The notes under the pieces: generated by a model
Told to the model about the DNA's origin: nothing
What the model saw: only the letters and a program-made list of their open reading frames with translations
The model's database searches: none
Shown: one piece after another, positions 1 to 32,484 of the stretch
Numbering within the stretch: the stretch's first letter is position 1
How the letters are laid out: each line of letters starts with the position of its first letter
Position numbers and translations under genes: made by a program
Assembly: GCF_902459465.1 (NCBI RefSeq)
Contig: NC_047068.1
Location: 434,001 to 498,000 of the forward strand
DNA from: Asterias rubens
Taxonomy: Eukaryota
DNA length: 64,000 bases
Direction: 5' to 3'

Positions 1-10
1 AAGTGAAGAC
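1..10 (-). CDS. Start of a downstream coding exon of the left-hand coiled-coil gene (continues off the window)
   Basis: Minus strand reads ...ttttaatcttttctttgtttctgctcaaaataatAG|gtcttcactt: long pyrimidine tract plus AG. Phase fits the previous exon (CA+G = Gln, then Ser-Ser-Leu). Confidence 0.6.
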
Positions 11-439
11 CTATTATTTTGAGCAGAAACAAAGAAAAGATTAAAAGTTGATAAAATATCTTTTGAAAAAATATTACCCTCCTGTGCTTAAAGAAGCCTC
101 AAAATCACCTTCCCTCATTATTTTGGCGCTGATACCTCAAACAAATGACAAAGGCAGAGATTTGAGAACCTTAATTCTTTCAACAGTGACCAAAATTCCA
201 TTATATTTAATTACTAGTTACATTAAGCTGGTGGTTTCTTCACATAACATGTATGTTAGTGACATATCTTGTCCCCAGCCCTAAACTTGTTTGAAGAAAA
301 TCAAATTTGAAGTTGCACTCTTTTTTTAAACTGCTTTTTCGAAGTCTGCTTACTATTTTTATTTTAGATTCAAGTCCTGCCCAAGTAAATTTTTCTTTGT
401 TCAACCCCACTCATGCATTTGGAACAGTTTTAGCTTTAA

Positions 440-872
440 AGGATTTGGGTACTTTTTCCAAATGTCCAAAGATTTACATTAAACTTATATATACATTGTT
501 TGAAGATAATGAAAGTAGAAAACTTCCCCACAAATATTAATTACTGAGGTGCTGCAATTTTTGAAAAATAAGTAAAACAAGTCACAAAACAATTCTTGTC
601 TCAGTGAGACAAAAATTATTTTAGCATGTAAAACAATATTATCCAGTTATGGTTATAACATACCATAACTGGTTGATACATTTTTACATGCTAAAACTGA
701 GACGAACATTATTTTTGTGACATTGTTTACTCATTTTTGAAAAAAATGCAGCACCTCAGTATAAAGTAATATTTTAAGGGAAGCTTTCTACTATCATAAT
801 CTTCATACTGTGTAAGTTTAATGTAAATCTGTGGACATTGTGTTTTGTGTTTGGAAAAAGTACATAGACCCT
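440..872. mobile_element. Kolobok-like MITE family C (palindromic body)
   Basis: TTAA at 436-439 and 873-876. Ends AGGATTTGGGTACTTTTT / AAAAAGTACATAGACCCT; long imperfect internal inverted repeats; second copy at 27108. Confidence 0.85.
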
Positions 873-918
873 TTAATCCGATCTCTCTTTTTCCCACAAG
901 AAAATTGTTTTCACATAC

Positions 919-1113
919 TGTATCCTATCGAGAGTCGTCATTTGTATCTCCAGCAATCTCTGCTCATCCTCCTCTACCTGCACCTCGAGGTGCGCGACCT
1001 CTTCTCGTAGCCTCTCTATCTCAGCGCTGTATCGGTCCTTAGACTCCTTCACTGTTGTCATGGCGGCCAGACAGTTGTCCAGCTGGTCGTCATGGTCACC
1101 ATCGTCGTTAAAT
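919..1113 (-). CDS. Internal 195-bp coding exon of an unidentified coiled-coil protein (FNDDGDHDDQLDNCLAAMTTVKESKDRYSAEIERLREEVAHLEVQVEEDEQRLLEIQMTTLDRIQ)
   Basis: Acceptor aatatAG at 1115-1114 and donor GTATGT starting at 918. Symmetrical phase 2-2, open frame, codon-like GC-rich composition in AT-rich surroundings, heptad-like E/L/K/R pattern. Confidence 0.85.
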
Positions 1114-1358
1114 CTATATTGTATTATAATAATAAAACCAATTTGTTTAAATTCATAGCTGAATAATTTCATTTTTAAGTTTCCAAATTAAACAAGTTTT
1201 TTTTTCTGAATTGAGTTTCAGCAGCTAACAATTTCACTTTCAAAGAATGGCCAATTCTGATATAATAGGCACAACCAATAAACAAGACATCTGAATAACA
1301 TTACATGTACTGCTACTGTGCTTTCACTTTTGAAAGTTTTCCAAAATAGTAAACTTAA

Positions 1359-1735
1359 AGGGAAGGTACACGTTTGGTAATTACTCAAAACAAATATTAA
1401 CTTAAAAACTGACTTGGTAACGAGCATTGGAGAGCTGTTAGTATAAAACATTGTGGGAAACGACTCCCTCTGAAGTAACGCAGTTTTTTAGAAAGAGGTA
1501 CTTTCTCACTAAAATAATAAAAGACTTCTAGCTAGAAGTCTTTTATTCCTATCTAAAAGCACACAAATTCGTCCAACAAGGGTGTTTTTTTCTGTCATCA
1601 TTTTCAATCAACTTTCGGTCAACTTCGATGACCGATTGAGCCCAAATTTTCACAGGCTTGTTATTTTATGCTTATGATGGGATACACCAAATGAGAACAC
1701 TGGTCTTTGACAATTACCAAACGTGTACACTGCCT
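1359..1735 (+). mobile_element. Kolobok-like MITE family A (central palindrome type P2)
   Basis: TTAA TSD at 1355 and 1736, AG..CT termini, ~24-bp TIR, 32-bp perfect palindrome 1516-1547. Strand is the family orientation. Confidence 0.9.
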
Positions 1736-2165
1736 TTAACCTGTGCTTGCGATAATCGTAACTCTAATTAGATATGTACATGCAAGTTTTGATCATTCCC
1801 CTTGAACCTCAGCAGTGTTTTGACGGATCAATCCTGTGACACAAATGACGCTTACGGTACCTTAGTAATTGGGTGGGTACACTTCAAATGTTAAAACAAA
1901 AACTGAGTTTCCCCAATTTTAACCTCAGTTTTGTCATTCTCTTACGTCTTATTATGAAACCCTTAATTTGAATCCATTGAATTTTCAGCCATTTCCGTCA
2001 GTTCATAAAAAACCCAGACAAAGTCATCAAGTTGCGCCAATTTTTTTTAAAATAAACTTTGAAGGCCAACTGTTCAGTGTTATAATTATCAATTTTCTGC
2101 AGCGTAGCGATACTGTACTATACTATGTAGGCCCTACTTCCAAAAAAAGACGAAAAAAAAGACAA

Positions 2166-2302
2166 CCATTCTGTGAAAGGGGTGTTACTAGGGCTAGGCA
2201 GTGCTGCAGTGCTGCAGTGCGTGGGCGCTGTCCGTTTTCAATACCCGTATATAGTTTGCACGCACTGCCGCACTGCCTTGAAACACCCCTTTCACGGAAT
2301 GG
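2166..2302. mobile_element. 137-bp MITE with CC..GG ends, piggyBac-like
   Basis: CCATTCTGTGAAAGGGGTGTT / AACACCCCTTTCACGGAATGG TIR. TTAA on the right; the left flank reads ACAA (imperfect). Confidence 0.6.
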
Positions 2303-2555
2303 TTAAGTCTAACTCGGCCGCGGCTCGGCAGTTCATCAATCCAAAAACATAAAGCATTATGCATATTGGGAAGTCAAAAAAATGGGCAATGCGGCAGAAA
2401 AACAACAGTGAGTAACACGTTTTTTAAATTTCACTCATCAAAACGGCAATGCAAGCATTATGAATGTATAGTTCAAAGGAAACTTCAGTTAGTGGTGGCT
2501 AACGGTCGCAAAACTTTCATCTATCAACGCCGGTTTCAAAAACGTATAGCGTTAA

Positions 2556-2943
2556 AGACAGTGTACACTATTGGTAACTGTCAAAGAGCAGTCTTCTCAC
2601 TTGGTGTATCTCAACATATGCATAACATAACAAACCTGTGAAAACTTGAGCTCGATCGGTCGTCGGAGTTGCGAGATAACTATGAAAGAAAAAACACCCT
2701 TGTCACATGAAGTTGTGTGCTTTCAGATGCTTGATTTCGAGACCTCAAGGCTCAAGTTCTAAACTTGAGGTCTCGAAATCAAATTCGTGGAAAATTACTT
2801 CTTTCTCCAAAACTAGGTCACTTCAGAGGGAGCTGTTTCTCACAATGTTTTATACCATCAACCTCTCCCCATTATTACTCGTTACCAAGTAAGGTTTTAT
2901 GCCAATAATTATTTTGAGTAATTACCAATAGTGTCCAGTGCCT
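2556..2943 (-). mobile_element. Kolobok-like MITE family A (hairpin type P1)
   Basis: TTAA|AGACAGTGTACACTATTGGTAA ... TTACCAATAGTGTCCAGTGCCT|TTAG; GATTTCGAGACCTC..GAGGTCTCGAAATC hairpin. Confidence 0.9.
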
Positions 2944-3420
2944 TTAGTAGGCCCACAATATTAGACCCCTAAAGGCTCACGGGGGAGCCTTATAGTTTCT
3001 AGAAGTAGAGACTACGGGCATGTGTCAGGCAGGGGGCATCCATTTGCCCTGTCTCTGTCTGTCTGTCTGTTGCCCCAGCTTCTATTGAGTATTGTCAATT
3101 GAAATAACTTAGGTTAGGGGGCTTAGCATGCTTAGTTCTATTCTAAATCTAACTTCCAAGTTCTATTATTTTTTAAATAGACAAAACTTAAGTGGCCTAT
3201 TTGCCCTCTCAGAGATGAATCCTAGGCTTGCTTGAATCGATCAATGCTGGTACGGTAGTGAATAGTGTGTTGTTGTTGGGCGCTGGCAATCCGAAACGGC
3301 GACCCCAACCCAGTCACCGTACCCAGTCAGCGAGCATAGCGAGTGTTGAACCCAATTCGTGAAAAAATATTTAGGCTACATTTTATTTGGTATAAATTTC
3401 GCCTGTTTTGCAAAACTTAC

Positions 3421-3476
3421 CCCTGAAGGGCTCTATTCGCCTCTTCGAAGATATCGGCATCTGACGAGGCTGCCAT
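3421..3476 (-). CDS. First coding exon of the same gene (MAASSDADIFEEANRALQG); exon probably spans 3421-3509 with 33 nt of 5' UTR
   Basis: ATG at 3476, donor GG|GTAAGT at 3420. Phase 2 joins exactly to the 919-1113 exon (GG+A = Gly). Acceptor-like tract tttttccttctttctacacttacatttacAG ends at 3510. Confidence 0.8.
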
Positions 3477-4467
3477 CGATTGTTTGGTAGGTCAATTGGG
3501 AAGGAAAACCTGTAAATGTAAGTGTAGAAAGAAGGAAAAATTCAGCTAGCGGGTCACCATTTTTGGAAAGGAGCGCTAAATTATCTATCGCCTCTTGAGG
3601 GCGCACTGTAATTCAACCGGTGTTTTATTGATCAGACGCTTCCTCGATCAGCAGAGGGGGGTGCTTTTATTATGTTTTATAAAAGTTTCTCAATTTTGTA
3701 TTGTGTTCAGTAATGACAATCAACCGACTTAAATTATACCTAAGGGACATTTTCAATAATATACAATGGAACCAACCACTTGATGTAGCCTTGGGGTACG
3801 TTACACGTGGCAAAAGTTCAAGGATATCTCATGGAAAAATCGAAGAAGAAAAACGAGCAATTTCTTGGCCCATCAACATTTCAAACTCACTTTTCTTGAG
3901 TTTGGAACAATATGCTAGTTCCTCTGTTTTGGAAAGTGTTTCTTTTGCACGCAGTGTTCCTGTAACTTGTTGTTATTTAAAAAAAAACTTATGTTAGGCC
4001 TATTTGCAACGGCTGTTTAAAGATCGAACATGTTCGTGTGTAGCCCGAACATAGGCCAATCGCCAGGGCAATTCGCAAGTCTATGGCATACCATATTGGC
4101 CTGCTGGGTAACTGGTTGTGGGGAAACGTTCCGAACGTGTTCCCTAAACCGTGAGAAATTAATAAAACAATTGGTTTTGATTATCTCAGTCGAAGAAACC
4201 TTAGAATAAAACAGAAATAATACCAAATCAATCTGGTTCTGCCAACTAGTGGAAAAGGTGGGAAAATAAGAGTGAACAAAATGTGACCCAACTAAAACAT
4301 GGTCCGCACTTATATGGGGGGGGGGGTGACTCAACATTGTTCAGGTCTCAGCTCAAACAGCCATCGAAGTCGAGTGTTCAGTGTTTTCAAACATGGGGTA
4401 TTTCTTTTCTAGAGCTCATGATCATTTTGTAAGTCTGATTCACTTTGGCTCAAAGACTCAGTGCCAG

Positions 4468-4647
4468 GGCCCACACAGAGCTGCTTAAGTAGAAAATATT
4501 GCTTAACGAAACTACTAAGCAGAAATGAGCAATACCAGTCACAAATTGCACATGATTGTGACATGGTAGTTTGGTTGGTAACCTTGGTAAGCATAATGTT
4601 GTTCTCAGCTGGTTTTGTGCTATAAAGGAGTTCTTTGAAATTGGCCC
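4468..4647. mobile_element. Harbinger/PHIS-like MITE H1
   Basis: CAG|GGCCC..AGAGCTGCTTAAG ... GAAATTGGCCC|CTG. Confidence 0.75.
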
Positions 4648-5364
4648 CTGATATCATTGGTAAAAATATGGTTCCTTCCTCCATGGTTAATGTTAAACGG
4701 TTATTGTCATGGTATTATCCAGCAATTAACGCAACCGCACCACCACCACCTCGCCTTCTTTTGGTCCCAGACTTTCTCTCCCCTCCCCTGCTTAGGTTTC
4801 CTCTGTCCATCTACCGCCAAGTCCACTGTTTATTTATTGTGGTCAAGTTCCTAATGGCCTCCGGTGAAGTATGGCTCAACTTTGCTCTCTTTTTACCTTT
4901 CCTAAGAAATTTACTAGGACAAGTAAACGGTCCTGCAATGTTTTGAAATACGGGGGTTAACCACGCTGAGTAAATAACGCGTGTTTAATGTATGCCTCAT
5001 TTGCCTTCATTAAATCAAGAGAGTTTTTTTTTCTCTCGTTATGAAATGGCAGTGCGACTATTGCGTTCGCTGGTGGGAAAATAAACACTTATCTATATAA
5101 AAGAGCCGCAGCGCTACCAACGTTTACCTACTGATGGATGACGTATTCATGGACTTTTAATGGACAGTTTCAGTTAAAAAAGTTATACTAGTAGGATAAT
5201 AGCGTCAGTATGGTTGAGATTTGTGCCTTTGATGATACAAGCATGGTATTTGACACAGTCAGTGTCATGTACATGAGAAAGTTTGACTATGGGCCATCGC
5301 AGGTTTGAACTTTGAAAACAAAAAATTAATAGAAAAGAACATGCAACCGGCGGCCATTTTGAAA

Positions 5365-5470
5365 TCTTCGATGTCCCAAATTTTTACAGGTTTGTCAAGT
5401 TATGCACTATAATGTAGGGATACGATACACCAAGTGACAATACTGGTCTCTGACAATCACCACTGCCGTT
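5365..5470 (+). mobile_element. Decayed 3' fragment of family A MITE
   Basis: cttcgatg..aaattttacaggtttg..gatacaccaagtga..actggtctctgacaatcacc matches the right part of the family. Confidence 0.55.
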
Positions 5471-8400
5471 CAACCAACCCTTGTAGGCCTACAAACTTTC
5501 TATATGATATCACCTCTATTTCTACCTCCATGTTCTGACACAAAACATTTTTCAAAAGTTCTCCGAAACTTCATTTCAATTGAAATATTTTCCTCTAATT
5601 ATATTTTTCTGTATAAAAAGGGTGCCAATAACATTGATCTCTCTCATCAGTGCGTCACAGCCGACAGAAACTGAGATAAACTTCTTCAGGTGAAAAACTC
5701 GGGTATCAAATTTCATAGACACGGGATTGTCTTGTAAAAACTTCTCGAAAGGTTCTGGGGCGGTTCCCTGTTTCACATGGGGCATTTACTCATCGGCACC
5801 TCCCCAAGCCTTAGGCACCAGCCTTAAAGGGGCACGTTCTGCCTTTGGATTGGGCTCCTTTGTAGGCCTATAGGGCTATGAAAAGACTTGTATAATTGAA
5901 TATTGCATGAAAAAGGGCATTATAGCAAGTTTATTATTGTGATTCACTAAAAAAAAAAACCTTGACATTGTGTGGTTTTGTAACTGCATGACAGAACATG
6001 GTACTAATTTTGTTTTTACTCAATTCCGCTGGTTATAATGATTTCAATATGCACATTTTATCTTTCTTTAAAATCATTTTCACCATTTACAACATACTGT
6101 ACACTGTACTAATTACAACACGTTTCAAGGAACAACGGCAACTAAAGATAAAGGTTTTGTGTACTTTCAGACAACATTATTTTACAGAGTGACCATTGTA
6201 ACGCGTAAAAGCTTGGGTATCATAGCATCATATTATTGCAATGTAATGTTCCTGTTTGCACGAACATCGCTTCCAGATTTAGCACATGTCGGTTTTACTT
6301 TTCTATTGCCAAGTTTGCTCTTCTGCTGAATAGGCCATTAACCGTGCACTATTAACATCTTCAATTACTGTCTAGTTCCCTATCTGTGTATTTTAAAGAT
6401 TCACATAGTACCAAAAAGGGACCAGCCTATTTTACCTCGCAGCCTCGGTTTAGTTACAATTGAATTGAGTGAGACGACATGACAACAAAGTTCCAATCGC
6501 ACAATCCCTTTAAGACGGTTGAACAAGAAGGAACTTTTGGACCTGGACGATATACATATCCCGAGGACCTATTTCGATGTGGGGTGACGCATACACCTGG
6601 TTTCCCAATTGACCTGTCATACAAAATATTCCCGACACTATATCAGTTGAAATGATCTCTTCCGTAATCAATAATTTCCTGCTCGAGTTCCAACGGCATC
6701 CGCCGAGGAAATATTATGGCACAGTCTGAGGGTAAAGACACCGTGTACAGTAGCGTTCCACCACCACACACTCGAAGGGAGGAGGGGGGAGCGGGGTATT
6801 AGGGGAACCCCTTCAGGCTAAGCAAGGGTGATGTCATCCTCCACGAGATGTTTGTAGATGGGTCCATACTGGCAGTCGAAACAGGGGGACCGCACCGCAC
6901 CGCACGGGGCCATCCCGTGGGGGTTGTCCACACTTCAACACCGTTGAACTTGAATCAACAGTCGGGGGGCCGCGGTGGTTGTCGGAGATCGCCAAACCAA
7001 AACGCTGCCTGCATGCTCGCATTACCCCCACCAAGCTCGGGTTTGTGTGCTCAGGTTTCTAGCGGTAATTTCTCCAGATTTCCTGACAGAGCCTGGAGTT
7101 ATTGAGTGATGCCCGGGTAGCTTGTCATCACCTTTCGTTCTGCTGCTCCTCGCGTCTTAAGTCGGGCAGGTTTTTTAGACTCCCCCTTTTTATTTAAGTT
7201 AAGAGGAAATCGTATACGGGGGGAAAACTTTGGAGATCTTATAAGATTTATTTCCAAAGAGGAAGATTTCAGATGTAATGAGGCTAATACAACTTAAAGA
7301 GTTGATAACTACCTTTAAATCCAGCGGGGATCAAAAGTTCATTTCGGATTGGACGTTTATAAAATGTTGATTTCTGTCCTTCGGCCGGGCCGGGTCGTAT
7401 AAGTGGGTCGTTGGGTTTTTTATTTTGAGAGCGGGGGAACGAGACAGTCAAAAATAAAATGTAAGGCCTAATGCGGCGACCTCCTGCGATTAGAGTAGAG
7501 GTGAACGTTTATACATTATTACATTAGGAAGTCATTGGTGTCGTAACAAAACTTTTCATAGACCTGCTTATTGCTCTAAGAAAAGTTTCTGCTACAAACA
7601 TCTGAAAAGGTAAGGTCCAATACATAATGGCTATGCGTAGAAATGTGGCAATGTTTTAAAGTGTGACATGCCCCCCGCCCAACCCCACAAAGGATTCCTT
7701 GTTGAAATTAATGTCATACTTCTTCGATTATGTATGTCTTAAATTTAATACATTTTCTAGTGTACTAAATTACACCCTCTCAAACTTGACGATGGTGAAC
7801 ACAGATGAACAAGTTCTCTGGGGCGGGGTCTTCCTTGGAGGTCTGGGGTTTTCTACCTCCATGATTTTAACAGCAAATGTTCTTGGAAGCTGATGTAGCG
7901 TTAATGACAAGGATATATTTTTGTCTCAAGTACATATACACTATACCCCCTTCCCCACACATGTAGAAATTCCAAGTTTATGAATTATGAGTTGCAATTC
8001 AGTACATACGGGTGGTCCGAATCCACCACCACCAGAGTTACAATAGAAACACCATAGAGTGGCACTCAGTAGAAGTTGACGATGAGTAATTATGATTTTG
8101 TAAAGTAATGTCCCACCACCGCAACCGATGTAAAGATATGTGATTACAAGACCCATGGCCACAGTCTGGCCCAACGATGTTTTGATAGGTGAGTAGTCAA
8201 AGCTTTCGTTGAACAGGTGCCGTGAAGTGATGAATATATCCCCGTGAACTTTCGGGTCTCCACGCGCCTCGAAAGAATAAAACCCGTATAACTTTGCTAT
8301 TGACTCGATCCATCAAAGTTAATGTTTGAAATATATTTTTTTTATGAACACAAACTTATGGTTTCTTTGGGTTTTTTGTTCTTCTTGCAGAGCTCTTACG

Positions 8401-11400
8401 GACGCCCGAGTGAGCGGCGTTGACAGAGAACAACCATGGGTTCTGCAGCGCCGTTGTACGGTGGTGTAGTTGTGCGTTATTATAGCAGCCATGAGCCTAT
8501 TTCATGATTCAGAAATATTTCATCGTGCATTTCAAGATCAACTTTTGCTCTTGATTCCTGGCTGAAGTTCTTGATTCCTGGCTGAAATTATTTCAGGAAG
8601 TCTGTAATGGATTAATGAGCAGCGCCCTCTATAGTTAAGAAAACATAAACTTTTCCATCAAGGGATACGAAGGTACTTGCGAAGGGGGGGGGGTGAAGGT
8701 ATTCCACCCATAGTTACTTATTCCAGTTATTTATTCCACTGTAAGACATTCCATCACTCCCACATTATAAAATTGCATAGAAAACTTCAACTCGTTAATT
8801 CAGCTTTCCTAAAATGCATGTTTTACAACCACAGTTTGGGCTTCGGCAAAGTTTAAAAGTATTCCATTTCCACCAATCATGAGAAAGATATTTGGCAATA
8901 GGGCCAGTGCAGATTTCATGGCAGATAATAAAAATAAAAAAAAATGCTTGTTATTCTACCCGTCGGAGCTTATATTTTTTCTCTCCAAGATTCAATTAAT
9001 AGCCAAATGTCTTTTTTATGACATACTCTGACTGTATGCCAAAGTAAATGCTTGTATCAATATCCCCCCCCCCCCGCAATATTTCACCTGCTGTCCAACT
9101 ATAAGAAAATCACAACTAGAAACAGTATCAACTCATTACCTGCTGAGGATGCTCCTGATCAAACCGACCGCACCATCCACTGAGACCCGAACCATCCAAC
9201 GGACCACACATGCAATCGTTAATGGGTCGATTGAGCAGATATTACGGGGCGGTTTGTGGAAGAGTAGACTACCAGGTCGTGTGGCGGAACCCGGGACTGC
9301 TTGTCAGCTTCATTTACCACCTGTCGGATTATTGAAAGAAAGACGAACAGAAAGAGAGAGAAAAATGGAAATGTGAAACTAAAAATACTTGCAATTTTGT
9401 TTCCATGATTCTAAGCAGGTTCTAAGTAAACTTCAGGGTGGCCTAAAATGATACGGGTACCAATAGCCTTTCAGTCATTTTAGCAGTGGGTTCTTTTATC
9501 CCCGAATAACCACCTGTGAAATAACGAGGACAATCTTAAACAAACACAAGTGGAAGTTGGACACGTGGCCGTGTTATAAGAATGCAACTCAACCAAAGTT
9601 ATGGATAGTGTTGTTTCCTTAAATGGGTTTTAGAAATGTCAACATTACTCCTGTTGTGTTGTATTGAGGTACCATGCATTAAAGGTATAGTTTGAGTAAT
9701 TGTCAAAAACCAGTATCCCCACATGGTGCATCTCAACATGCATAAAATAACATACTTACGAACATTTGGGCTCAATACTAAACTTCTTTTACATGGCCAT
9801 TGATTTTGGTTTATATACATTTCCTGCAAAAAGAAAAGGGGGGGGGGGCGGGCGTCTAGAACTTTTGCCTGAGATGGAATGAAAATAATTTTTGCCTGCT
9901 TTGTAAACATACATTTCTTTTCTTTCGACTGTGCCCAAAATTGTTCCTCAGTGTTATTTTGCCCAAAGTTGAGCCCCTAAACCCTTGGTCATTGGACCAA
10001 ATGCTATTCAAAGATTATGAGTTTTTTTTTTTCAAAACAAGTTGAAAACCTGCAGATCACAGGCGTCTCACATTATATAAGACACAATGAACGAGAAAGG
10101 TTGTCGTTAGAGCAAGGGTTGACTCTAGACTAAGACCCCAGTTTCAACTACACTATCGCTCATACAATCAAAATATTAGCACCAAGTTATTGGCGTACAG
10201 CCAAATCAACCCCCTTTTAGTTTGTGTTGTTAATACATTTTCAAAATCGGCAAGTTTTAAGGATTTAGTTGGCAAAAGAGCCAGACACATTTTTGCTAAC
10301 GGGTGAACTTTATACACATTTTTAACTAATTGGATAACACCGCAAAAAATATCACTCTATTGGCATCCATTGACCGCAATATTGGGCACAGTTTCCTCCA
10401 AAACTAAAGCAGAGAGAGAGAAAGAGAAAAAAAAATCAAATTACAAGAGTTTTTTTCCTCTATTTTATGAGGGGAGCGGTCTCTGATGAGCCGCGCGTCT
10501 GCGGGAACGATCCGTAAATCAAACTACACCGAGAGTCGCACCGCGCCAGGGAACCAAGGCGGGGACTGGCCGTCAACTGACCCGGCACTGAGCCCCCATG
10601 GCTCCGCACCCTCGTGCCGCTACGCTCCCCGTGGAGCCGTTAAAACAAAATATATTTCACTATACAATTCACGGAAGAATCACAACTCGTGAGCTAGGTT
10701 GGGGCCTGTCGCTTGTTTTTGCGCTTGGAGGCTTAATTTTGAAACTTCCGTCTGAATGGACAAAATATAAGTATTATAAATATTGAGAGTTTCACAAAAA
10801 GATGAGCCTGTTGGGAACAAGAAAAAGCCATTGTTTACAAGCTAAAAAACACAACCTCTACATTTTAATGTCCGTTTTTCACCTCTGTCCTTACTCTATG
10901 GTTTGTACTTCAACAAACCAGGGGCTACCTTCGTGAATAAACTTCCAACGAGCTTGAATCAGACAAAATTTTCGGACCTTCGCCATAATGTGTCAGTATC
11001 TTTTTAAAAGTAAATTATGACTGATTTTTGTAAAGAGATATCGACATAACACACTTTTCATTGTAGGATATAAGTAACTAAAAGAATAATTTCCAAGGGC
11101 TTTATGGGAAGGTTTCAAAAGTATTATTAGGCCTGCATGATTGAAGGAAATAAAAAAAAGATTGTTTTATTTTAGTCTGAAAGCTTATGATTATGAAGCT
11201 CAATTAGAACCACTTTTTTTATTTGCAATAAAAATTCCCAACTGAAGTGAAGCCATATTCGAGAAAACTGTATCTCAAACCTAACAATGTAACAGCTGAT
11301 TTCGGCTTTTACAACCAAAATTTAGGACGATCATGTTTACATGCTGGAAATTGGTCAATACTATGGAAATATTGACTACTCGGAGGGGCACAGTTAAAAC

Positions 11401-11896
11401 TATAATAGGCCCAAGGTGATGTCAAAACCATGACTACGCCCGAAGCGAAGTTCCATTCATTATGGTTGATAAATATTAAAAAAAAACTAAAACAAAAAAA
11501 ACCACACAATTAAAAACCATTAAAAAAATATGAACACTGTGAGCATTTTCAACAAAAGCCCAAAATAATAAAGACAAACATAGAACTAATCACACAACTA
11601 TTTTAGCCATATTTTCACAATGTGTAACGGCTCCTCTGATTTCAGTTTTCCTGAATTGACCAGTGGCGTTAACGCTAACAGGCCTGCGCCATACGTCGAA
11701 TAATTATGAGTTCATAAGATAGATAAAGAAAGATTGGTAAAAGAAGTGGTTATAGAAGGTTAGGATTACCTTCTGGTACTGCAGAGTCATCTGGATTAGT
11801 TTACCAGCAGATTGGGTTACCTGCCAAATCATCCAGATAACTGGAATTGGAGTTACAAATCGGTTTAAAGGGGCTGTCGCGTCGTGATTAAACCAG

Positions 11897-17036: not shown

Positions 17037-18274
17037 CGTACAACCGTGTGCCACTGGAGTGCGCATAATCAGTGAATATTGTAATCAAAATTAACTCGAA
17101 AACCCAAAACACTAATACTGGAGTCAACATCAAACAACACAAATAATATACGCAAGGACAAAGTACTTTTCAACTTCCCACAAATTTCCTTTAAAAGTAC
17201 AGCGTTCTCCTCTATAGGTTTCGCGGTGATAGCTGCCGGCGCTTCGGACTTCCACCGTGACGAGAGAGGAAGTCGACCGGGAGATCCTCCCAATTTCCTC
17301 GGGGCGTTTTCTGGTTAGCATACCCAGCCTCCCTCGGTACCTTCCTCCATAATCCATGATGGTGGAATCTATCTACCATGAAACCGCTATGGAGGTGTCC
17401 TTTTGTTACCAAAGCCCAAATTACTACAGTGAGAGTCAAGTCGTGATTCTTTTTCGAAACAGACACCGTTTCTGAATTGGGTCGGTTAAAAACGTAATCG
17501 ATAAGAAAATCTGACCAATTTTGTTGTATAGGGCGAGATTCTGTGTCAGTTAATTGCATGAACAGTCAGGGAACACGACATAGGTGAATAGACCGTGATG
17601 CGGCCATCTTGTTTTCCTTCCATTCAACTTTAATGTAAAACTGAGTCGAGGAAAGTATAGCCTGAATCCATGAGTGACAATTCTCAAAGGTCCGTTTTCG
17701 ACTCCCCCCGCCCCCGTCGACTTCGGCTATGAGGATATTGTGCCGTTCACCTTCCGATGGTTCTTGCCGATGCAACATAAGAGGGACCGGTTTTCTGCGT
17801 CCACGTGGTTGCTGGACGTAAGACGGAGACTCAGCCCTTGCTGAAGCCATAACACAAGCCCCTGTGCCGAAGACCGCGGCTTTGGCTCCAGGCTCCGTCT
17901 GTGTCTTATTGAAGCTCCGATACCAAGAGCGTACGTTTAAAGGAAATTTACTCACGAAATCCCGAGTAGAAGCCTTGATTCGCAAAGCCCGTAAGTAAGG
18001 CCAATATTGGTCAGGGTACAGGCCTCCCTTCAGCAACCCAGGGAAACACAGTCCCCCATGTAACCGAATAAAGCTCGCCTCGGGTTAAGATGGATTTACG
18101 TGGATTTTCTCCTCGATACATTATTGAAACTTTCATAGCCAATCCCAGAGGTGGGTGTACACTGTACAAGAGACTTTGACGAGCGCGGTACGTACATGAG
18201 TCAAGGTCAGAGGTCAATATGTCTTTAATCTCTCTGCTGATGATGGACAGTGCCTAGATCTAGACAGTTATTAT

Positions 18275-18450
18275 ACTATTGCAATGCGTTGTGTACCACT
18301 CTGATTATAATGGTTGAATGTAAACCAATATTCTTCAGAAGACGGTCGGAGCACACTGATCGAAACGTCGAGCAGAAACCGGCTCTTCTCAGAGCTACCA
18401 CTACCCACAAAGACAAGATTTACTATACGTGATGTCAGCCGGCTTTCTCA
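18275..18450 (+). mobile_element. Penelope-like element end (pseudo-LTR) with degenerate hammerhead motif
   Basis: CAGAAGA-C-GGTCGG-AGCACA-CTGATC-GAAACGTC at 18336-18369, the CTGANGA..stem..GAAACGT pattern typical of PLE termini. Confidence 0.55.
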
Positions 18451-18499
18451 ACATTGTTCACTTTTTGCCAACTTGCATATCACTGACGTACTACCGACA

Positions 18500-18612
18500 A
18501 CACTAGTGCGTTGAGCACTATAGGCCTACTCATCATTTCCCAAGTCATGTGAACAATAAAAATCCACTGGCAAATAACTCGGGCGAGGTTCGAATCCACA
18601 ACCTTTGCCTGA
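18500..18612 (-). mobile_element. Probable fragment of another tRNA-derived SINE
   Basis: Minus strand ggttgtggattcgaacctcgcccgagttatttgccagtggattttt: T-arm-like sequence followed by a body unrelated to the DeuSINE. Only a fragment. Confidence 0.35.
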
Positions 18613-20259
18613 AGAACTAATGTTCCTGGCTCAAACTCAGAAAGGGCTTATTATAGTTACTGGTAGTGGTACTTGTGTTTTTAGTTTACAATTTCGAGCA
18701 AATCACCACCCACCCCCACCACGCCCCTTAAGAGTCCCCACACGCTTATGCCCAACTACTAATGTGCAGAGGAAAATATTATTTTTTTCTAGGCAATTAT
18801 TCCGGCCATTAATTATTTAATGCAAAACTCACAGCAAGATTCCCTCTCAAAATCCACACTTTGAAAGTTTTCCTGGATAAATAAGTCAAACTTATTCAAC
18901 GCTGGGGCTGGTTTTTTTTCTCGAAAAGTCAGATCTTTAAATCAATACATTAATGGAACGAACATACATTGGCCAGGTTTGCGAACAAGCCACAACAACT
19001 GATGAAAAAAAAACTCACTAGTATCAGAAGTCAGAATGGAATAAACAGATGAAGAAATTGTGGAAGAAAAGAAGTGGTATAAAGTGAGAGCCGCGGGTGG
19101 GGAGCGAAAATGGTCCTAGTTTCTATTAAGTGCCGAATCCCGTGATAATTTAGCCGTTTTTATTATGTCCGGTCACGGTGCGAGATCCCAGTTGCACCCC
19201 TACTGCTTCCCCCTAAACTTTCAATTCGGGTTTAATTTCTGTCAGTTGTAGTTCTACGCTAACATTAATTTCCGAATTTGATTTGTAGGCAGTGCTACAC
19301 CCCCATGCTGTGCCTGGGTATACATTGGTATACAGGTATTGTGAAAGCTAAGAAGCCTTTGCACAGTAGGAACACTTTCCAACCAAGTGTTTTGGGGGAT
19401 CGTTTTTCCTACTAATGCGATTGCCAGATTTGTTAATATTTGTCATTGTGAGGGTTTATTTATTTCTTCGTTGTTTGGTTTAAAAAATCAGCACAAATAA
19501 GGCGGAATTGGGTATAAATTATAATATCAAGGGATGCTGTTTAATAACCGGATGCGATTTGGCACTAATAGGCTTCAAGGGAGTCTGCTTCCCCGCCAGG
19601 ATAAACGTAAAAACAGAAAGTTACCTAAACTGGAACATTGTTCTAAAGAAATAAAGCGAACCATAAATTCAGGCCACATAGAGTTTTCGAAACAGAGATC
19701 ACCTTTTTCACATGATCTGTTGGTCTAGCATTTTGGACAAGTTCGAAATTTAATACTAGAATATTCTGGTATAATGAAGGGTAGAATTGGGTAATGAGGT
19801 ATTAGTCGTAAGGATTTCAATATCAAGTTTGCACAGTCTAGAGCTTACCTGAACGGGATTCCTGGTCGGAATATTTCTTCTGCACTGAGAAATCGTCACT
19901 GTCGTGCTGCTTTCCAATTGAGATTGTTGTCCTTGTTCTAAAAATAGATTAAAAAAAGTGAATTTTGTTAAACACAAAAACCAGGAACACAAATTTGAGG
20001 ATCTAAATTCTAAACATCAGAAAAACATTGCTTCCCGGTCACAGGGACCAGACTAATTTCTGGGGATGACCCGGATTACGTGTTGAAATTACTCCAAACT
20101 GTGCTTATAAAACTGCTTGGCAAATGTTGGAAAAACTTTATAAGCTGACATCTGGACTTAAATATCTATAGTGGGAAAGTTGATAGAAAATGGATAGCGG
20201 GAAAACGGGTTATGAAAATTACTGGTTATTGAAACACTGGAAGGGAACATCTGTTTTAA

Positions 20260-20626
20260 AGGGAAGGTACATGTTTGGTAATTATTCAAAACAAATATTC
20301 ATTTAAAAACTGACTTGGTAATGAGCATTAAAGAGCTGTTGATAGTATAAAACATTGTGAGAAACGGCTCCATCTGAAGTAGCATAGATTTTGAGAAAGA
20401 GGTAACTACTCACTAAAATAATAAAAGACTTCTAGCTAGAAGTCTTTTATTCCTATCGTAAAGCACACAAATTCGTCCAACAAGGGTGTTTTTTTCTCCT
20501 CATTTTCTCGCAACTTCGATGACCAATTTAGCTCAATTTTTTCTTAGCTTGTTACTTTATGCTTATGTTGGGATACACCAAGTGAGAAGACTGGTATTTG
20601 ACAATAAACAAACGTGTACCTTCCCT
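20260..20626 (+). mobile_element. Kolobok-like MITE family A (P2 subfamily, AGGGAAGG ends)
   Basis: TTAA at 20256 and 20627; TIR AGGGAAGGTACA(C/T)GTTTG at both ends; palindrome 20420-20451 identical to 1516-1547. Confidence 0.9.
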
Positions 20627-22800
20627 TTAACTGGGGGTAAATTGGTCAGGAAAAAAAAGATGACCAATATTTACACAATGAAAATCGTCACATCGGCATT
20701 CAAGATATGCAGCTCAGATGGTCAAGATGCAAGCAGCGCCTCTCTGTGAGGAATGAAGACACTCAGAGACCGACTGACCGAATTCCTGGTGAAGATCACA
20801 AATCCATTGAACACTGGTATCTTTATACGGTACAATACTAAGAAATTGTCATGGTTTGATAATGACCACTGCAGAAATTTTGACGTATATTCCATACATA
20901 TACTCCGGAAATACAGATATGTGTATTATTATTAATTAGGCCATGTCCGAATTGGTGGCTTCGGGCTTTGCTACCAATGGCCACAAGTATAGAAAAGGCC
21001 TATATTTCGAAGTTTCTGCTTGATCTTGTTCTTTCTTGGTCTTTTTTGATACTCCACCAAAATTAAGACATTCAGAAAAAAGGGCGAACGAGGGAGAAGA
21101 AAAGAAATCGTCCCAAGCCCAAGGTTCACCGCCCACAACCATGAGCTTCGATGTCCTACATGTCATCAAGATTCCATTCTAGACCGTACTACACCAAGCC
21201 TTAGTAGCGAGCCCCCGTTAATGAAGAGACGGGGCCGGGCCGACCGTGACTCCAGGGCAGACCGGGGGCCGTCGATGATCGATTCTGACTGACGTATCCT
21301 CCCACGGGCACCCATTCTGTCACTCCGGTAATTACACCCTTTGCTTGTAGCACTGGTATTATATTCAGTCGATACTATATTGAAAATATGAGTGACAGGA
21401 GGGGTATTAAATGAAGTTATACGAAGAAATCGATATTGGAGATGAGGGTTTTGGTTTGGTGAGTTGAGTAGGTCTTTAAAACATAAATCGAATAGAATAC
21501 TAAACAAATATCAAGTTAACATAATCGATACAACATTTTATAATTTGGGCATTATAATCAATACTGGAGTTTAAAGCACAAATTTGCCCTAATACTCGAC
21601 AATTTGAGTCTTGCTGTATAGAAAGAGTGAGTTGAACATATAATTGTCATTAATTATTAATTCAAGAGCTATTTAATTTATGATTCCTGGAAAATTAAAT
21701 CTATTCACACAAAATAACATTTCTGCAGTTTTGGTTCATTTTTGCCTTTAAGTCGTCCAAGCATTGGGAGAAATGAATGGAGTGAATTGGATGGGGTGCA
21801 TATAAGACAGTCTCTAAACAAAACAAATGGGAAAATAAAGAGAGTTCCCAATTATCTGATTCGGCAGACATAATTGGGTTTTACTTATCGTTGAAACGGA
21901 GGACTTTATAACAAAAGGGGGTCTGGGTGTTCCGACGGAGCGAATATGTCCTTGCTTCGCTTTCGTGTAAAGAACCACTGGGAAAATCTCTCTCAAACAA
22001 TGGGAAGTATCTAAACAATGTGATAACACAGAGTATTCCTCGATTTCAGGGGTTAACAAATATAAAACTTTGGTTTGTGTGTCTGTGTGGGCATGTCTAC
22101 TATTGATAACCGATGACTTTAACAAAAGGGATCCGGGAAAAAGTCACACCGGGGACAGTCCTCGGTAGATTTTGTGTACAAAACCAATGGGGATGTCCAA
22201 ACAATGGGAGAACAAAGAGAAGTCCTCGGTCTCTCGGGGTGTGTGTGTGTGTGTGCACATGAGGATTTGGATGGGGTTGATAAGAAATACATTTACTACA
22301 ACAAAATCGCAACCAAAATGCATTGTATCTTGACAGGTATCTTGTGTTTGCTTAGCAGATTATGCACACTGCTCAGAACTTACATCGAACCAACATGACA
22401 ATTACGTCTAGTACTAATAATCTGCACTCGAAAGAGCATGGGTGTATTTAGTTCAACGGCCGGTAGGGTAAAATGTGACTGTTGGAGCCTTCCACACAGA
22501 GAAATCTCACGGGATCCAAGTCCACAAATCACGGGAGAGAAAGTTATAGACTTTCCCAAAGGATCCCAGATCACAGTAAAAAACTATTTCATTAAAATAG
22601 CGGCTGTAATTGCTGAAGAAAGCCAATTAATTATCGGCATTGATATAGAGCGTTAGAAAGAGCGTGTGGCGAGTTGGTCAATGTTTTTACGGCTCCGAGT
22701 GGGGAAACCTTCGACCGTCACGCCGCTAGTGCTGAGTTACAAGATGTCGTTGTGGAACTTGCCCGGCGCCAGTCTACCTGCGGTGGTTACAGGTCTTTAA

Positions 22801-29153: not shown

Positions 29154-30337
29154 TTAACATTTTGTTGTTGTTGCTATGAGCAGAATACCATTCATAAGTT
29201 ATAATGTGGCATAGCTGTTTGGCTGGTAACCTTATTCTAGAATATTTGCAATATGCTTAGCTACTTATGGTGTAAGTAGCTTATGCTTGGTCCGGGTCTT
29301 CGGTATACAATATTACACAGCTCTACTTGCCGTAAACGGACAGGTTGGTGGCGCTTACGGCAACGAAAGGCGCAAGGGTTCTCAGCCAGCCATTAAATTG
29401 TCAAATTTCATGAATAAATAAATTTACGAGTCACGTCTCTACACCTTTGCTGAGCAGAATTGCACCAGTGGAAACTAGGAGATACATACCATCATTTTCT
29501 GAGACTAAGTTTCTGCTAAACACTAAGCGTAAGCTCATGAGATTTGGCATAATTTTTGCTTAATCGTTCGGTTTATGGTTTGAAACTAAGTAATTTGCGG
29601 TGTTGCGCATCAATTTCATCTTGTAATAGATTGTACATGGTGCAGCCTACGGGTGCCTATATTGTATGGTACACTCCATTCAGAAACAAACCAAAAATCC
29701 AAAGGAAATCGAAATAGTTCGGTCGGGTACTCGAGAAAAACCACATAACCGTTTATTTTTAGCCTGTATCTCACATTTAATCACTGTCTTTGAAGTTAAA
29801 AAAAAAATGTACACAACATTTTGAAAGTAAATCATATTAATGGCGATAAAGGGAAAATGATATGTGGTTTAAAAGTCAGTTACAATCAGCTGATCTCATA
29901 AAAAGCTGGAATTATAATAACACTTATTCTCGGATTAAGTTTTTAGTCAAAATTGCTCTCTGCCGGTTATTGCCAGTTGTAAATCCATCAAGACACTAAT
30001 TCAACACCGAGGCCCCTCCACGGGAAGGAGACCGGAGCAGCGAGGCCGAGCAAAGAAACACCGGCGGTAGAATCAGAGAGAAACACGGCGGGGATGGTGA
30101 GCCCCAAATCCCCTCTCTCGTACACCGCACTTTCATCACACCTTCAAGAATGTTACAACTTTTCTTCTTGGTCATCATATCACCCTTCCAGAGAGGGTGA
30201 TGAAATCAACTTTAATGCGAGAGCTGAGATGAGGGAAGGTTGTAAAACTGTCCGCTTAAATTAGAAGCTCCTCTCAAAGTTGGACCAGGCTCATGAAGAG
30301 TTTTGAAATAAAATGACATGACCTTTTTAGGGGTTGT

Positions 30338-31459
30338 TACTAAGCCCGGGAAGGGACAGTGGTAAGAAAAAAATATGCAGGGGCTAATTCGTTCGCACGG
30401 TTAAGTAATCCGTTCGAACGAATTAATAATCCGTTCGAACGAATTAATAATCCGTTCGCACGGTTTAGTTATCCGTTCGAACGAATTAGCAATCCGTTTG
30501 AACGAATTAGTAATCCGTTCGCACGGTTTAATAATCCGTTCGAACGAATTAGTAATCCGTTCGCACGGTTTAGTTATCCGTTCGAACGAATTAGCAATCC
30601 GTTTGAACGAATTAGTAATCCGTTCGCACGGTTTAATAATCCGTTCGAACGAATTAGTAATCCGTTCGAACGAATTAGCAATCCGTTCGAACGAATTAGT
30701 AATCCGTTCGCACGGTTTAACTAAGGCATGAAATGGCGCTGCACGCATGCGTAAGCAATCCCCTCACAACAACACTTTGCTTCAAGATGTCCACCCTTGT
30801 CTTTTCAATTAGCAATGCATCTATTGACAAACTTATCAACACGGTCATCATCAGAGTCAGAACTTGTGTTGCGGCCCTCTGCCATCTTGAAGCAAAAAGT
30901 TGTTGTGAGGGGATTGCTTACGCATGCGTGCAGCGCCATTTCATGCCTTAGTTAAACCACTGAACGGATTACTAATTCGTTCGAACGGATTGCTAATTCG
31001 TTCGAACGGATTACTAAATCGTTCGAACGGATTATTAAACCGTGCGAACGGATTACTAATTCGTTCAAACGGATCGCTAATTCGTTCGAACGGATAACTA
31101 AACCGTGCGAACGGATTATTAATTCGTTGGAACAGATTACTAATTCGTTCGAACGGATTATTAGACCGTGCAAACGGATTGTTAATTCGTTCGAACGGAT
31201 TACTAAACCGTGCGAACGGATTACTAAACCGTGCGAACGGATTACTAATTCGTTCAAACGGATTGCTAATTCGTTCGAACGGATAACTAAACCGTGCGAA
31301 CAGATTATTAATTCGTTTGAACGGATTACTAATTCGTTCGAACGGATTACTAAACCGTGCGAACGGATTATTAATTCGTTCGAACGGATTACTAAACCGT
31401 GCGAACGAATTAGCCCCTGCATATTTTTTTCTTACCACTGTCCCTTCCCGGGCTTAGTA
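30338..31459. mobile_element. 1122-bp non-autonomous fold-back DNA transposon, IS3EU-like
   Basis: Direct repeat GGTTGT at 30332-30337 and 31460-31465; termini TACTAAGCCCGGG..CCCGGGCTTAGTA; 47-bp identical outer arms, 21-bp arrays (16 and 22 units), 69-bp inner arms, 93-bp spacer. TAY..RTA ends with a 6-bp TSD is the IS3EU signature as I recall it from the Repbase classification. Confidence 0.8.
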
Positions 31460-32484
31460 GGTTGTATATTTTCTCTTGATCAGTATTTTTAAGCCGGCGG
31501 TGACCCTTCGGCGATGGGGTTCAGGGCATTGACCGAGAGGCAACCTCAATCCCAGGTGATATTTCTCTAGAGGGATGTGACGGTATGGAGCTCGACGATC
31601 AGATCCCTGTAGTAGATTTTTGAGGACTTTGTGATTGATTTTTTGTTTGGTGAAAGTATTCTGTAATTTAACTAATAAGTCTAATGCTGTTTCATCGTGT
31701 ACCCCACTCCCCTCCCGAGTAAAATGGTCAGTGGCCGACGGGACATTTTTGTGAGGAGAACAAAATAAAGTAGACATTTTGAGGGGGGGGGGTCTCATGT
31801 ATCTAAAACCATCATCGCAGACATTGTCATAATGTGAGGTGAAGGGGAAAGCGGGTGCAAATACATGTTATTTAAAGTGTGGAACATTTGTTGTGTATGT
31901 ATTTTTTTTTTTTATCTTACTGGGGGGGGGGGGCTATCCCATGCAACCCCCTCTCTTTAGTTACGGTTACGACAGTGGCTTCGCATGTTGTCGATCCCAT
32001 GAGGAGGGGGCAAGATTTTTGAGCGGAGGAGGGGAGGGGAGGGGGGCTGCCCTATCCACTGGTTAGTCCACTCACTGAAAATGATTTCACACATCGTGGT
32101 TACTGGATCATAGGTCTACCCTCTCCGTATCCTCACATGCCATTTCAACCTAGTGCAATCAACTTTACCCTCTGTCTTATACCGTTGTATCATAAACAGG
32201 ACTATGTGGATTATATGGTGAAAACGCATTGAACAGACACGAAAAACTTTTGTATTTTAAAGTCTCTATCAATCTCATGTATATAGCGACTCAAAATGTA
32301 AGAAATAATTTCAGGGTGTATGCCCCCACGTATATGAAGCTCACTTCACTCATCACCTTAATACCCGACGGATATGTCGTTCCCTTGATATCTCTTTATT
32401 GCCAGGGGGCTCTTTGTCTTCATTATAGCTTCATTTGACTATCCTGTCTCATCATATAGGACCCTGCCCCCGCCGTGGACTGCA

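Follow-up and report, generated by a model that had tools for sequence, protein, structure and literature searches.

A probable miniature IS3EU transposon in the starfish Asterias rubens and the convergent transposase and HECT-like genes of its long relatives

What kind of element leaves two facing arrays of short tandem repeats between copies of a single hexamer, and from what parent does it come? The structure that raises this question lies at positions 30338–31459 of a 64,000-nucleotide stretch of the Asterias rubens genome (contig NC_047068.1, positions 434,001 to 498,000 of the forward strand; hereafter the window). A preliminary description, made from the letters of that stretch, had proposed a young internal-deletion derivative of an IS3EU-like transposon. 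We conclude that the feature is very probably a recently transposed, non-autonomous miniature copy of a DNA transposon of the IS3EU superfamily: its termini, arrays and inner arms are held in common with long copies elsewhere in the genome (L031–L033), which carry a transposase gene and, facing it, a second gene related to HECT-domain proteins.

The element is 1122 bp long, starts with TAC and ends with GTA, and is bounded by two copies of GGTTGT (30332–30337 and 31460–31465), its target-site duplication (TSD). Its outer 47 bp are identical when the tips are compared in inverted orientation (left terminus of the TACTAAGCCCGGGAAGGGACAGTGG... type, 30338–30384, plus strand; right terminus, 31413–31459, minus strand), and perfect identity actually extends over 65 bp. 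The left subterminal array (30385–30720, plus strand) consists of 16 units of 21 bp of two types, with cores CCGTTCGAACGA and CCGTTCGCACGG, and contains a 105-bp higher-order duplication in which units 4–8 equal units 9–13. The right array (30952–31412, minus strand, 461 bp) has 22 units, the innermost short by 1 nt, and an additional 63-bp period reported by Tandem Repeats Finder. The first core, CCGTTCGAACGA, contains a perfect 10-bp palindrome, CGTTCGAACG, and the degenerate core motif CCGTTCGMACGR has 27 matches in the window, all within the element, compared to 0 expected from shuffles. Between the arrays, two inner arms of 69 bp (30721–30789, plus strand; 30883–30951, minus strand) differ at 2 positions, both terminate in CTTCAAGATG and enclose a 93-bp spacer (30790–30882). 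On re-measurement, all the figures of the preliminary description were correct, from the TSD, ends, 47-bp tips and unit numbers to the 105-bp repeat, 69-bp arms and 93-bp spacer. The hairpin that it anticipated was also recovered: modelled as single-stranded DNA, the whole element folds back into one hairpin of ~500 bp (minimum free energy, -584 kcal/mol), from which six surplus units of the right arm bulge out.

We searched the A. rubens assembly (417.6 Mb, 150 contigs) for further copies using a degenerate 25-nt pattern of the terminus. The pattern has 52 genomic sites, every one beginning with TAC, compared to 0 for the reversed control, which indicates roughly 25 elements. When termini were paired on the same contig (15 pairs), 6-bp direct repeats were perfect in 12 pairs, all mutually different, and one further pair had a single mismatch. 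One long copy, on contig C58, sits inside a dispersed repeat of which four other copies are empty, with matches to the left and right flanks overlapping by exactly 6 nt (C15:12616326-31, C19:851184-89, C15:14442691-96 and C15:12793028-33; contig and position), which fixes the length of the TSD and the limits of the element. Thus, the 6-bp duplication proposed from a single copy holds genome-wide. The window copy differs from a copy at C15:5564706-5565827 at only 2 of 1122 positions (99.8% identity); because the two have different TSDs, this near-identity points to very recent movement.

Family termini also occur in an unusual arrangement at C14:9786458-9789651 (L020, L026 and L030), a 3-kb cluster with ten of them. 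Two stand back-to-back, one base apart (9788033/9788035), a terminus plus five units is repeated in tandem with a period of 151–155 bp, and a larger block of ~1.6 kb is duplicated as well. The cluster looks like satellite-like growth seeded by a transposon end, or like self-insertion.

The same genome contains five long copies of ~9.2 kb, each with two convergent genes, one of them a transposase of the DDE type, as had been foreseen for autonomous relatives. In the copy at C18:1535769-1545011 (L033) both genes are open. The copy at C58:8422-17603 has a TAA within the transposase, that at C21:4490112-4499232 a frameshift in the HECT gene, and that starting at C15:14664560 a decayed HECT gene; the fifth, which ends at C15:14124056, is decayed. 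Similar open reading frame (ORF) sizes on both strands had raised the possibility of one gene duplicated in two giant arms, which is excluded since self-alignment limits the arms to ~600 bp; it also revealed L032 as the same element in the opposite orientation. Each end carries 13–17 units of 21 bp with a palindromic or near-palindromic core of 10–12 bp, followed by an inner arm of ~250 bp with an ATG, an exon of 16–18 codons and a GTAAGT donor. On the HECT side the outermost bases are TACTAAG, on the transposase side TACGGAG; both are followed by ..GCCCGGGAAGGGACAG, and the transposase-side end reads TACGGAGCCC.

Two further features of the long copies were noted. In all of them, a 400-bp palindrome (L033:4894-5293, L031:4946-5345 and L032:4656-5055) separates the two genes at their 3' ends. 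It consists of two inverted copies of an unrelated repeat of ~200 bp with very high abundance in the genome (3876 candidates at first look) and is a nested insertion older than the spread of the long copies. In the C18 copy, intron 1 on the transposase side contains homopolymer runs of ~45 T and then ~20 G (L033:8560-8640, minus strand).

We characterized the two genes from their exons, which were queried and folded separately. The main transposase exon matched the Pfam family rva_4 (integrase core domain) at 82 bits (cut-off 26) and rve weakly (E = 0.0018). Homologues number in the hundreds, are 380–390 residues long and come from ray-finned fish, bivalves and echinoderms (54–68% identity). 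Aligned to them by tblastn, the transposase exons occupy L033 positions 8228-7395 and ~7180-6842 on the minus strand, and the gene's own ATG aligns with residues 1–2 of the fish proteins. Residues D132, D191 and E232 are invariant in 23 homologous transposases, and no H..H..C..C pattern of an HHCC zinc finger was seen on reading the N-terminal 130 residues; the protein is a DDE transposase of the integrase/IS3–IS481 type, with its first catalytic aspartate at position 132. It is 58% identical to a Danio rerio protein whose element shares its termini, TSD length and partner gene, which lends indirect support to placing it with IS3EU and GingerRoot.

For the partner gene, the NCBI A. rubens model P0001 scored 29.6 bits against Pfam HECT (cut-off 23.9), and its relatives carry Pfam HECT. 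Exons 2 and 3 alone gave no Pfam match, and individual exons of the two genes retrieved nothing useful when searched by sequence against the PDB, so the fold was recognised only through the P0001 model, the homologue alignment and an AlphaFold2 prediction. That prediction, for exon 2 from 36 homologues, had a mean predicted local distance difference test score (pLDDT) of 90.3, and its best 50 PDB matches were all HECT domains (Smurf1, NEDD4, HUWE1, UBR5 and E6AP). Exon 3 retains the catalytic-cysteine motif AHTC, which is also the alignment consensus. The accessory protein is therefore predicted to have a HECT fold with an N-lobe and a C-lobe bearing the catalytic cysteine, and to be E3 ligase-like. 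The closest HECT relatives have an extra N-terminal region of ~260 residues that the protein of the window element's family (hereafter family 1) is without.

These characteristics can be compared with published groups. IS3EU elements end in TA..TA, usually have TSDs of 6 bp, do not possess an HHCC finger and place the first catalytic aspartate 100–300 residues from the N terminus (PMC10045372). Fungal IS3EU elements have TAYGG..CCRTA ends, 6-bp TSDs and, on the opposite strand, an accessory alpha-kinase gene, plus TET/JBP (Kojima 2025; PMC12730594). GingerRoot, described in 2019, belongs to the same lineage as IS3EU and has 6-bp TSDs and terminal inverted repeats (TIRs) of 100–150 bp (PMC6839031). 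The starfish elements resemble IS3EU and GingerRoot in their 6-bp TSDs (seen in paired copies, at empty sites and, as described below, in a second A. rubens family and in zebrafish), TAC..GTA ends (TACGG at one end of the long copies), rve-type DDE transposase without an HHCC finger, and close homologues in ray-finned fish, molluscs and echinoderms. Their TIRs are long, well over 30 bp in the window copy (arms of ~450–570 bp). The IS3EU-type termini named in the preliminary description agree with the published TA..TA and TAYGG..CCRTA forms (PMC10045372, PMC12730594). All traits examined agree with published IS3EU, and the element is very probably a new member of that known superfamily. The papers searched mention no HECT partner, no 20- to 23-bp subterminal arrays and no start codon inside the TIRs, and the starfish arms, ~600 bp long in family 1 and reaching ~1.5 kb in family 2, exceed the 100–150 bp of GingerRoot. 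The fungal elements, which likewise pair a transposase with an accessory gene in the opposite orientation, carry an alpha-kinase (plus TET/JBP) where the animal elements examined carry a HECT-domain protein. The GingerRoot paper (PMC6839031) makes no mention of HECT, subterminal repeats or a second ORF, and a literature search for HECT combined with IS3EU found no paper; the structure and function of IS3EU were recently described as largely unexplored (PMC11934779).

How did the 1.1-kb copy arise from such a parent? Window positions 30701–30789 are nearest to the transposase-side arm (97.8%, compared to 93.3% for the other arm), and positions 30784–30990 are the HECT-side arm read inward up to L033 position 898. 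The spacer corresponds approximately to L033 positions 800–898, that is, HECT exon 1 and the beginning of its intron. From these alignments, one deletion took out everything from just past the transposase-side ATG to ~50 bp into HECT intron 1 (breakpoint 30789|30790), and the joined ends share 2 nt of microhomology (TG). Nine copies of 788–1122 bp have this junction, ATG|TCCACCC, indicating that the deletion arose once and that its product was then amplified. Together with the 99.8% identical dispersed copy, this supports the young internal-deletion derivative that had been proposed. Among the nine copies, the truncated arm has 10–16 units and the other arm 12–23; the arrays therefore change independently in each arm, again as anticipated.

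The deletion also explains where the inner arms of the window copy end. Its left inner arm ends in an ATG at 30787–30789, cut by the deletion immediately afterward, and both inner arms end exactly at the ATG because the deletion broke there; in the long parents, arm homology continues ~170 bp past the ATG. The 47-bp identical tips of the window copy are a secondary feature; long copies have two slightly different ends, TACTAAG and TACGGAG. The window subfamily has TACTAAG on both sides, and two 891-bp copies show the association opposite to that of the long copies. On the simplest reading, identical tips would have arisen by recombination or gene conversion between inverted arms.

From the right arm, the spacer reads as a 26-residue peptide that the preliminary description took for a real N terminus. 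In the HECT-side arm of L033, the sequence runs through CTTCAAG, the ATG, 16 codons and one further base to GTAAGT (donor consensus G|GTAAGT), and a polypyrimidine tract and CAG acceptor lie ~1.2 kb downstream. Joining the two completes a split codon (phase 1) in frame with the HECT ORF. Judging by these consensus signals and the frame, MAEGR(D/N)TSSDSDDDRV is the putative exon 1 of the HECT gene. Its remnant in the window, identified by alignment to L033, comprises the ATG, 16 codons and one further base (30837–30885, minus strand), followed by the start of intron 1 (30790–30836, minus strand), in which the donor, GGTAAGT in the long copies, is mutated to GATAAGT; the C10 copy has an intact donor. 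Because of this mutation, the last residues, DKFVNRCIAN*, are intron read-through and only MAEGRNTSSDSDDDRV is exon 1. The N-terminus claim is accordingly borne out for the first 16 codons, the sole coding part, and fails for the remainder, and the long-copy gene to which the peptide belongs is the HECT-domain accessory gene, not the transposase.

A paralogue of this exon 1, 18 codons long and followed by the same donor, lies in the transposase-side arm and is probably a leader or upstream ORF. An in-frame join of this exon through an alternative donor, GAC|GTATCT, fits the frame and was not adopted because it is speculative. Two motifs of the family-1 arm, the 10-bp palindrome ACGCATGCGT and, at the ATG, AAGATGGCGG, resemble NRF1-type and YY1-type core-promoter motifs and are treated as a lead only. 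A putative promoter and leader in the window is the HECT-side right inner arm (30883–30951), which has the palindrome and, at its ATG, the AAGATGGC motif.

A second IS3EU-like family of A. rubens (family 2; C2:6902752-6910812, C43:166992-175775 and C15:12820036-12832229) places the start codon within the inverted repeat without any splicing assumption. Its transposase is 52–55% identical to that of family 1 and its HECT gene 27%; it has tips TACGGAGCCCCTAAGGGGACATAC and, at each end, 8–14 units of a 21-bp repeat, TTTCGTTCCCTCGAAATAATA, and one copy has a perfect TSD, GATTTG. In the C2 copy the inverted repeats are ~1.5 kb long (97–99% identity), and in the C2 and C43 copies they end 12 codons inside both genes. 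The transposase begins MDQDEMDAAIKV-YFSMGL... and the HECT ORF MDQDEMD(A/V)(T/A)IKV-SIREQ..., and in C43 the HECT gene is a single open, intronless frame that runs through a VHTCG motif to the stop. The two genes of family 2 thus share an upstream region, a start codon and the first 12 residues, which supports the view that the arms hold expression signals and agrees with the start codons within inverted arms that had been predicted. A start codon inside the inverted repeats is then indicated for both starfish families, with the arms as putative promoters.

Does this layout extend beyond starfish? In zebrafish, a gene with a HECT match follows the annotated rva_4 gene in convergent orientation, and the element is complete: TIRs of ~400 bp with tips TACGGAACCCCGGAAGGGAC (decamer form TACGGAACCC, one mismatch to TACGGAGCCC), 13–15 units of a 23-bp repeat, TTTTGCGTTCCCTCGCAAAGATG, in each arm, and a perfect 6-bp TSD, GAGATA. 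The bivalve Sinanodonta woodiana has an rva_4 gene with a convergent HECT gene, a tip TACGGAGCCCCTTAAGTGAC and then ~30 units of 21 bp (TATTTCGTTATTTCGAAATAG) with 42-, 63- and 105-bp higher orders. In the sea urchin Lytechinus pictus, the convergent gene, which has no recorded Pfam match, matches HECT relatives by tblastn, and the tip TACGGAGCCCGAGAGGGGACATG precedes 19.5 units of 20 bp (TAAGTCGTTCCCACCACTTA). For Sinanodonta and Lytechinus, array and terminus were seen on the transposase side only. The acorn worm Ptychodera flava has a HECT gene with an unannotated convergent transposase ~3 kb away, 21-bp arrays (19, 105 and 23 units) whose core, AAGATCTT, is palindromic, and a looser tip-like motif at one end; a search for the right terminus of this element found none. 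At the HECT locus of Misgurnus, no transposase was found within 10 kb.

Overall, the decamer TACGGAGCCC occurs in both A. rubens families, Lytechinus and Sinanodonta, and with one mismatch in zebrafish. Subterminal arrays of 20- to 23-bp units (approximately two helical turns) were found in all six lineages, with a CGTTC core in five of them, the exception being Ptychodera. The transposases across these lineages are only 50–65% identical, and the recurrence of arrays at such distances argues that they are functional; most simply, they would be transposase-binding sites. Two of the loci had local peculiarities. In zebrafish (L048, Danio rerio CM111203.1; locus positions 1-9620 and 19911-21527), the complete element lies within a 186/371-bp satellite array. 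The Ptychodera locus (L034) has an inverted partial second HECT copy beyond the transposase (10908-11822 versus 18100-19014; 915 bp, 96% identical) and is a compound or rearranged element.

Taken together, these observations suggest the following course of events. A single deletion would have fused the transposase-side arm, just past its ATG, to HECT intron 1 and so produced a 1.1-kb foldback, which then spread while its arrays gained or lost 21-bp units separately in each arm and its tips became identical. Transposase supplied by long copies would bind the repeated units through its N-terminal helix-turn-helix region, pair the ends, cut at the TA termini and insert the element with a 6-bp stagger. 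The arms may hold the promoters and first exons of both genes, in which case the miniature copy retains two inward-facing promoter modules, and it could form a ~500-bp hairpin or double-stranded RNA.

Parts of this scheme have parallels in better-known transposons. The closest functional analogue is MuDR, of the maize Mutator system, in which a transposase and a helper gene are convergent, inward promoters lie inside the TIRs, and deletion derivatives are mobilised in trans; it differs in its Mutator-like element (MULE) transposase and 9-bp TSDs, and it has neither tandem subterminal arrays nor a shared start codon. Foldback (FB) and Galileo of Drosophila have long inverted arms of tandem short repeats whose numbers are unequal between arms and copies, and in En/Spm and Ac repeated subterminal motifs serve as transposase-binding sites. 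All of these have other transposases and other TSD lengths, and the starfish arms also hold a first exon. More tentatively, we suggest that animal IS3EU elements might be a conserved two-gene system, in which identical TIR promoter and first-exon modules drive the transposase and a HECT helper from a shared start codon, with the CGTTC-core arrays as landing pads for the transposase. The HECT protein would permit transposition by acting on host factors, or on the transposase itself, and miniature foldbacks, with two convergent promoters retained on either side of a short spacer, would make double-stranded RNA that feeds back on the family. We consider this scheme possible, with the odds against it.

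Several other explanations of the window feature were considered. Its shape, with unequal inverted arms of tandem repeats, is generally reminiscent of Drosophila FB and Galileo, and it could be a foldback or miniature inverted-repeat transposable element (MITE) of another superfamily (hAT, P/Galileo, MULE or classical FB) that is merely near IS3EU-like genes in the long copies. We regard this as highly improbable: 12 of 15 copies and four empty sites show TSDs of 6 bp rather than 8, 7–9 or 9–10 bp; in termini, arrays and inner arms the element is continuous with the long copies, where the sole transposase is of the rve/rva_4 type and not the P-superfamily or FB-associated enzyme that goes with 7- to 9-bp TSDs; and in other phyla this gene pair is again flanked by the terminus TACGGAGCCC. 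That the feature is an assembly artefact or a local palindromic duplication is scarcely credible. Long palindromes are a known assembly hazard, but at least nine dispersed copies have the same internal junction with different TSDs and flanks. Co-option of the window copy by the host, as a hairpin or small-RNA locus or a regulatory element retained for that role, would fit the near-perfect hairpin and the two putative promoter modules facing inward; we judge it quite improbable, as its 99.8% identity to a dispersed copy makes it too young to show conservation, an Rfam search of the window gave no match, and the flanks are ordinary single-copy DNA. A further alternative concerns the arrays alone, which might be neutral, satellite-like expansions or host-factor sites, with only the terminal ~25 bp mattering for transposition. 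Unit number varies freely (10 to 23), higher-order repeats arise, including the tandem blocks of 151–155 bp in the C14 cluster, and the Ptychodera unit is without the CGTTC core. However, arrays with a period of 20–23 bp recur at one subterminal position across six lineages, among which transposase identity is only 50–65%, a CGTTC-containing core persists in five of the six though the remaining unit differs, and arrays are always in both arms, inverted. We therefore consider this reading of the arrays unlikely, if a good deal more plausible than the other alternatives.

Some observations weigh against descent of the window copy from an IS3EU parent as outlined here, or at least against details of it. 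Three of the 15 terminus pairs have no matching TSD (C14:9758362, C19 and C10, the last with one mismatch). An empty allele was sought for the window insertion and none was found, which reflects the fact that both flanks are single-copy in the assembly and offer no paralogous site. The frame continuity from exon 1 to exon 2 of the HECT gene, as deduced from the consensus signals, has a one-in-three chance of being an accident, and the transposase-side exon 1, joined through the obvious acceptor, stops after 6 codons, out of frame with the transposase. In the arms, present-day long copies show only 87–98% identity to the miniature copy, and its direct parent need not be among them. Nonetheless, a miniature IS3EU copy remains by far the explanation we favour for the window element.

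The value of the finding beyond one more IS3EU element lies in the conserved architecture of the parents, a little-described, cross-phylum layout in which transposase and HECT-like genes face each other, each behind an array of ~21-bp repeats. The picture held in every animal element that was opened: a near-invariant TACGGAGCCC tip (looser in the acorn worm), 20- to 23-bp arrays and a convergent HECT partner. For annotation, it explains as transposon genes many models named 'uncharacterized HECT domain' or 'integrase core domain' in fish and marine invertebrates. For experiments, A. rubens provides one long copy with both frames open, together with a family of miniature copies of very recent origin. 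A HECT E3 ligase carried by a transposon would represent a novel type of helper, paralleling the alpha-kinase and TET/JBP of fungal IS3EU.

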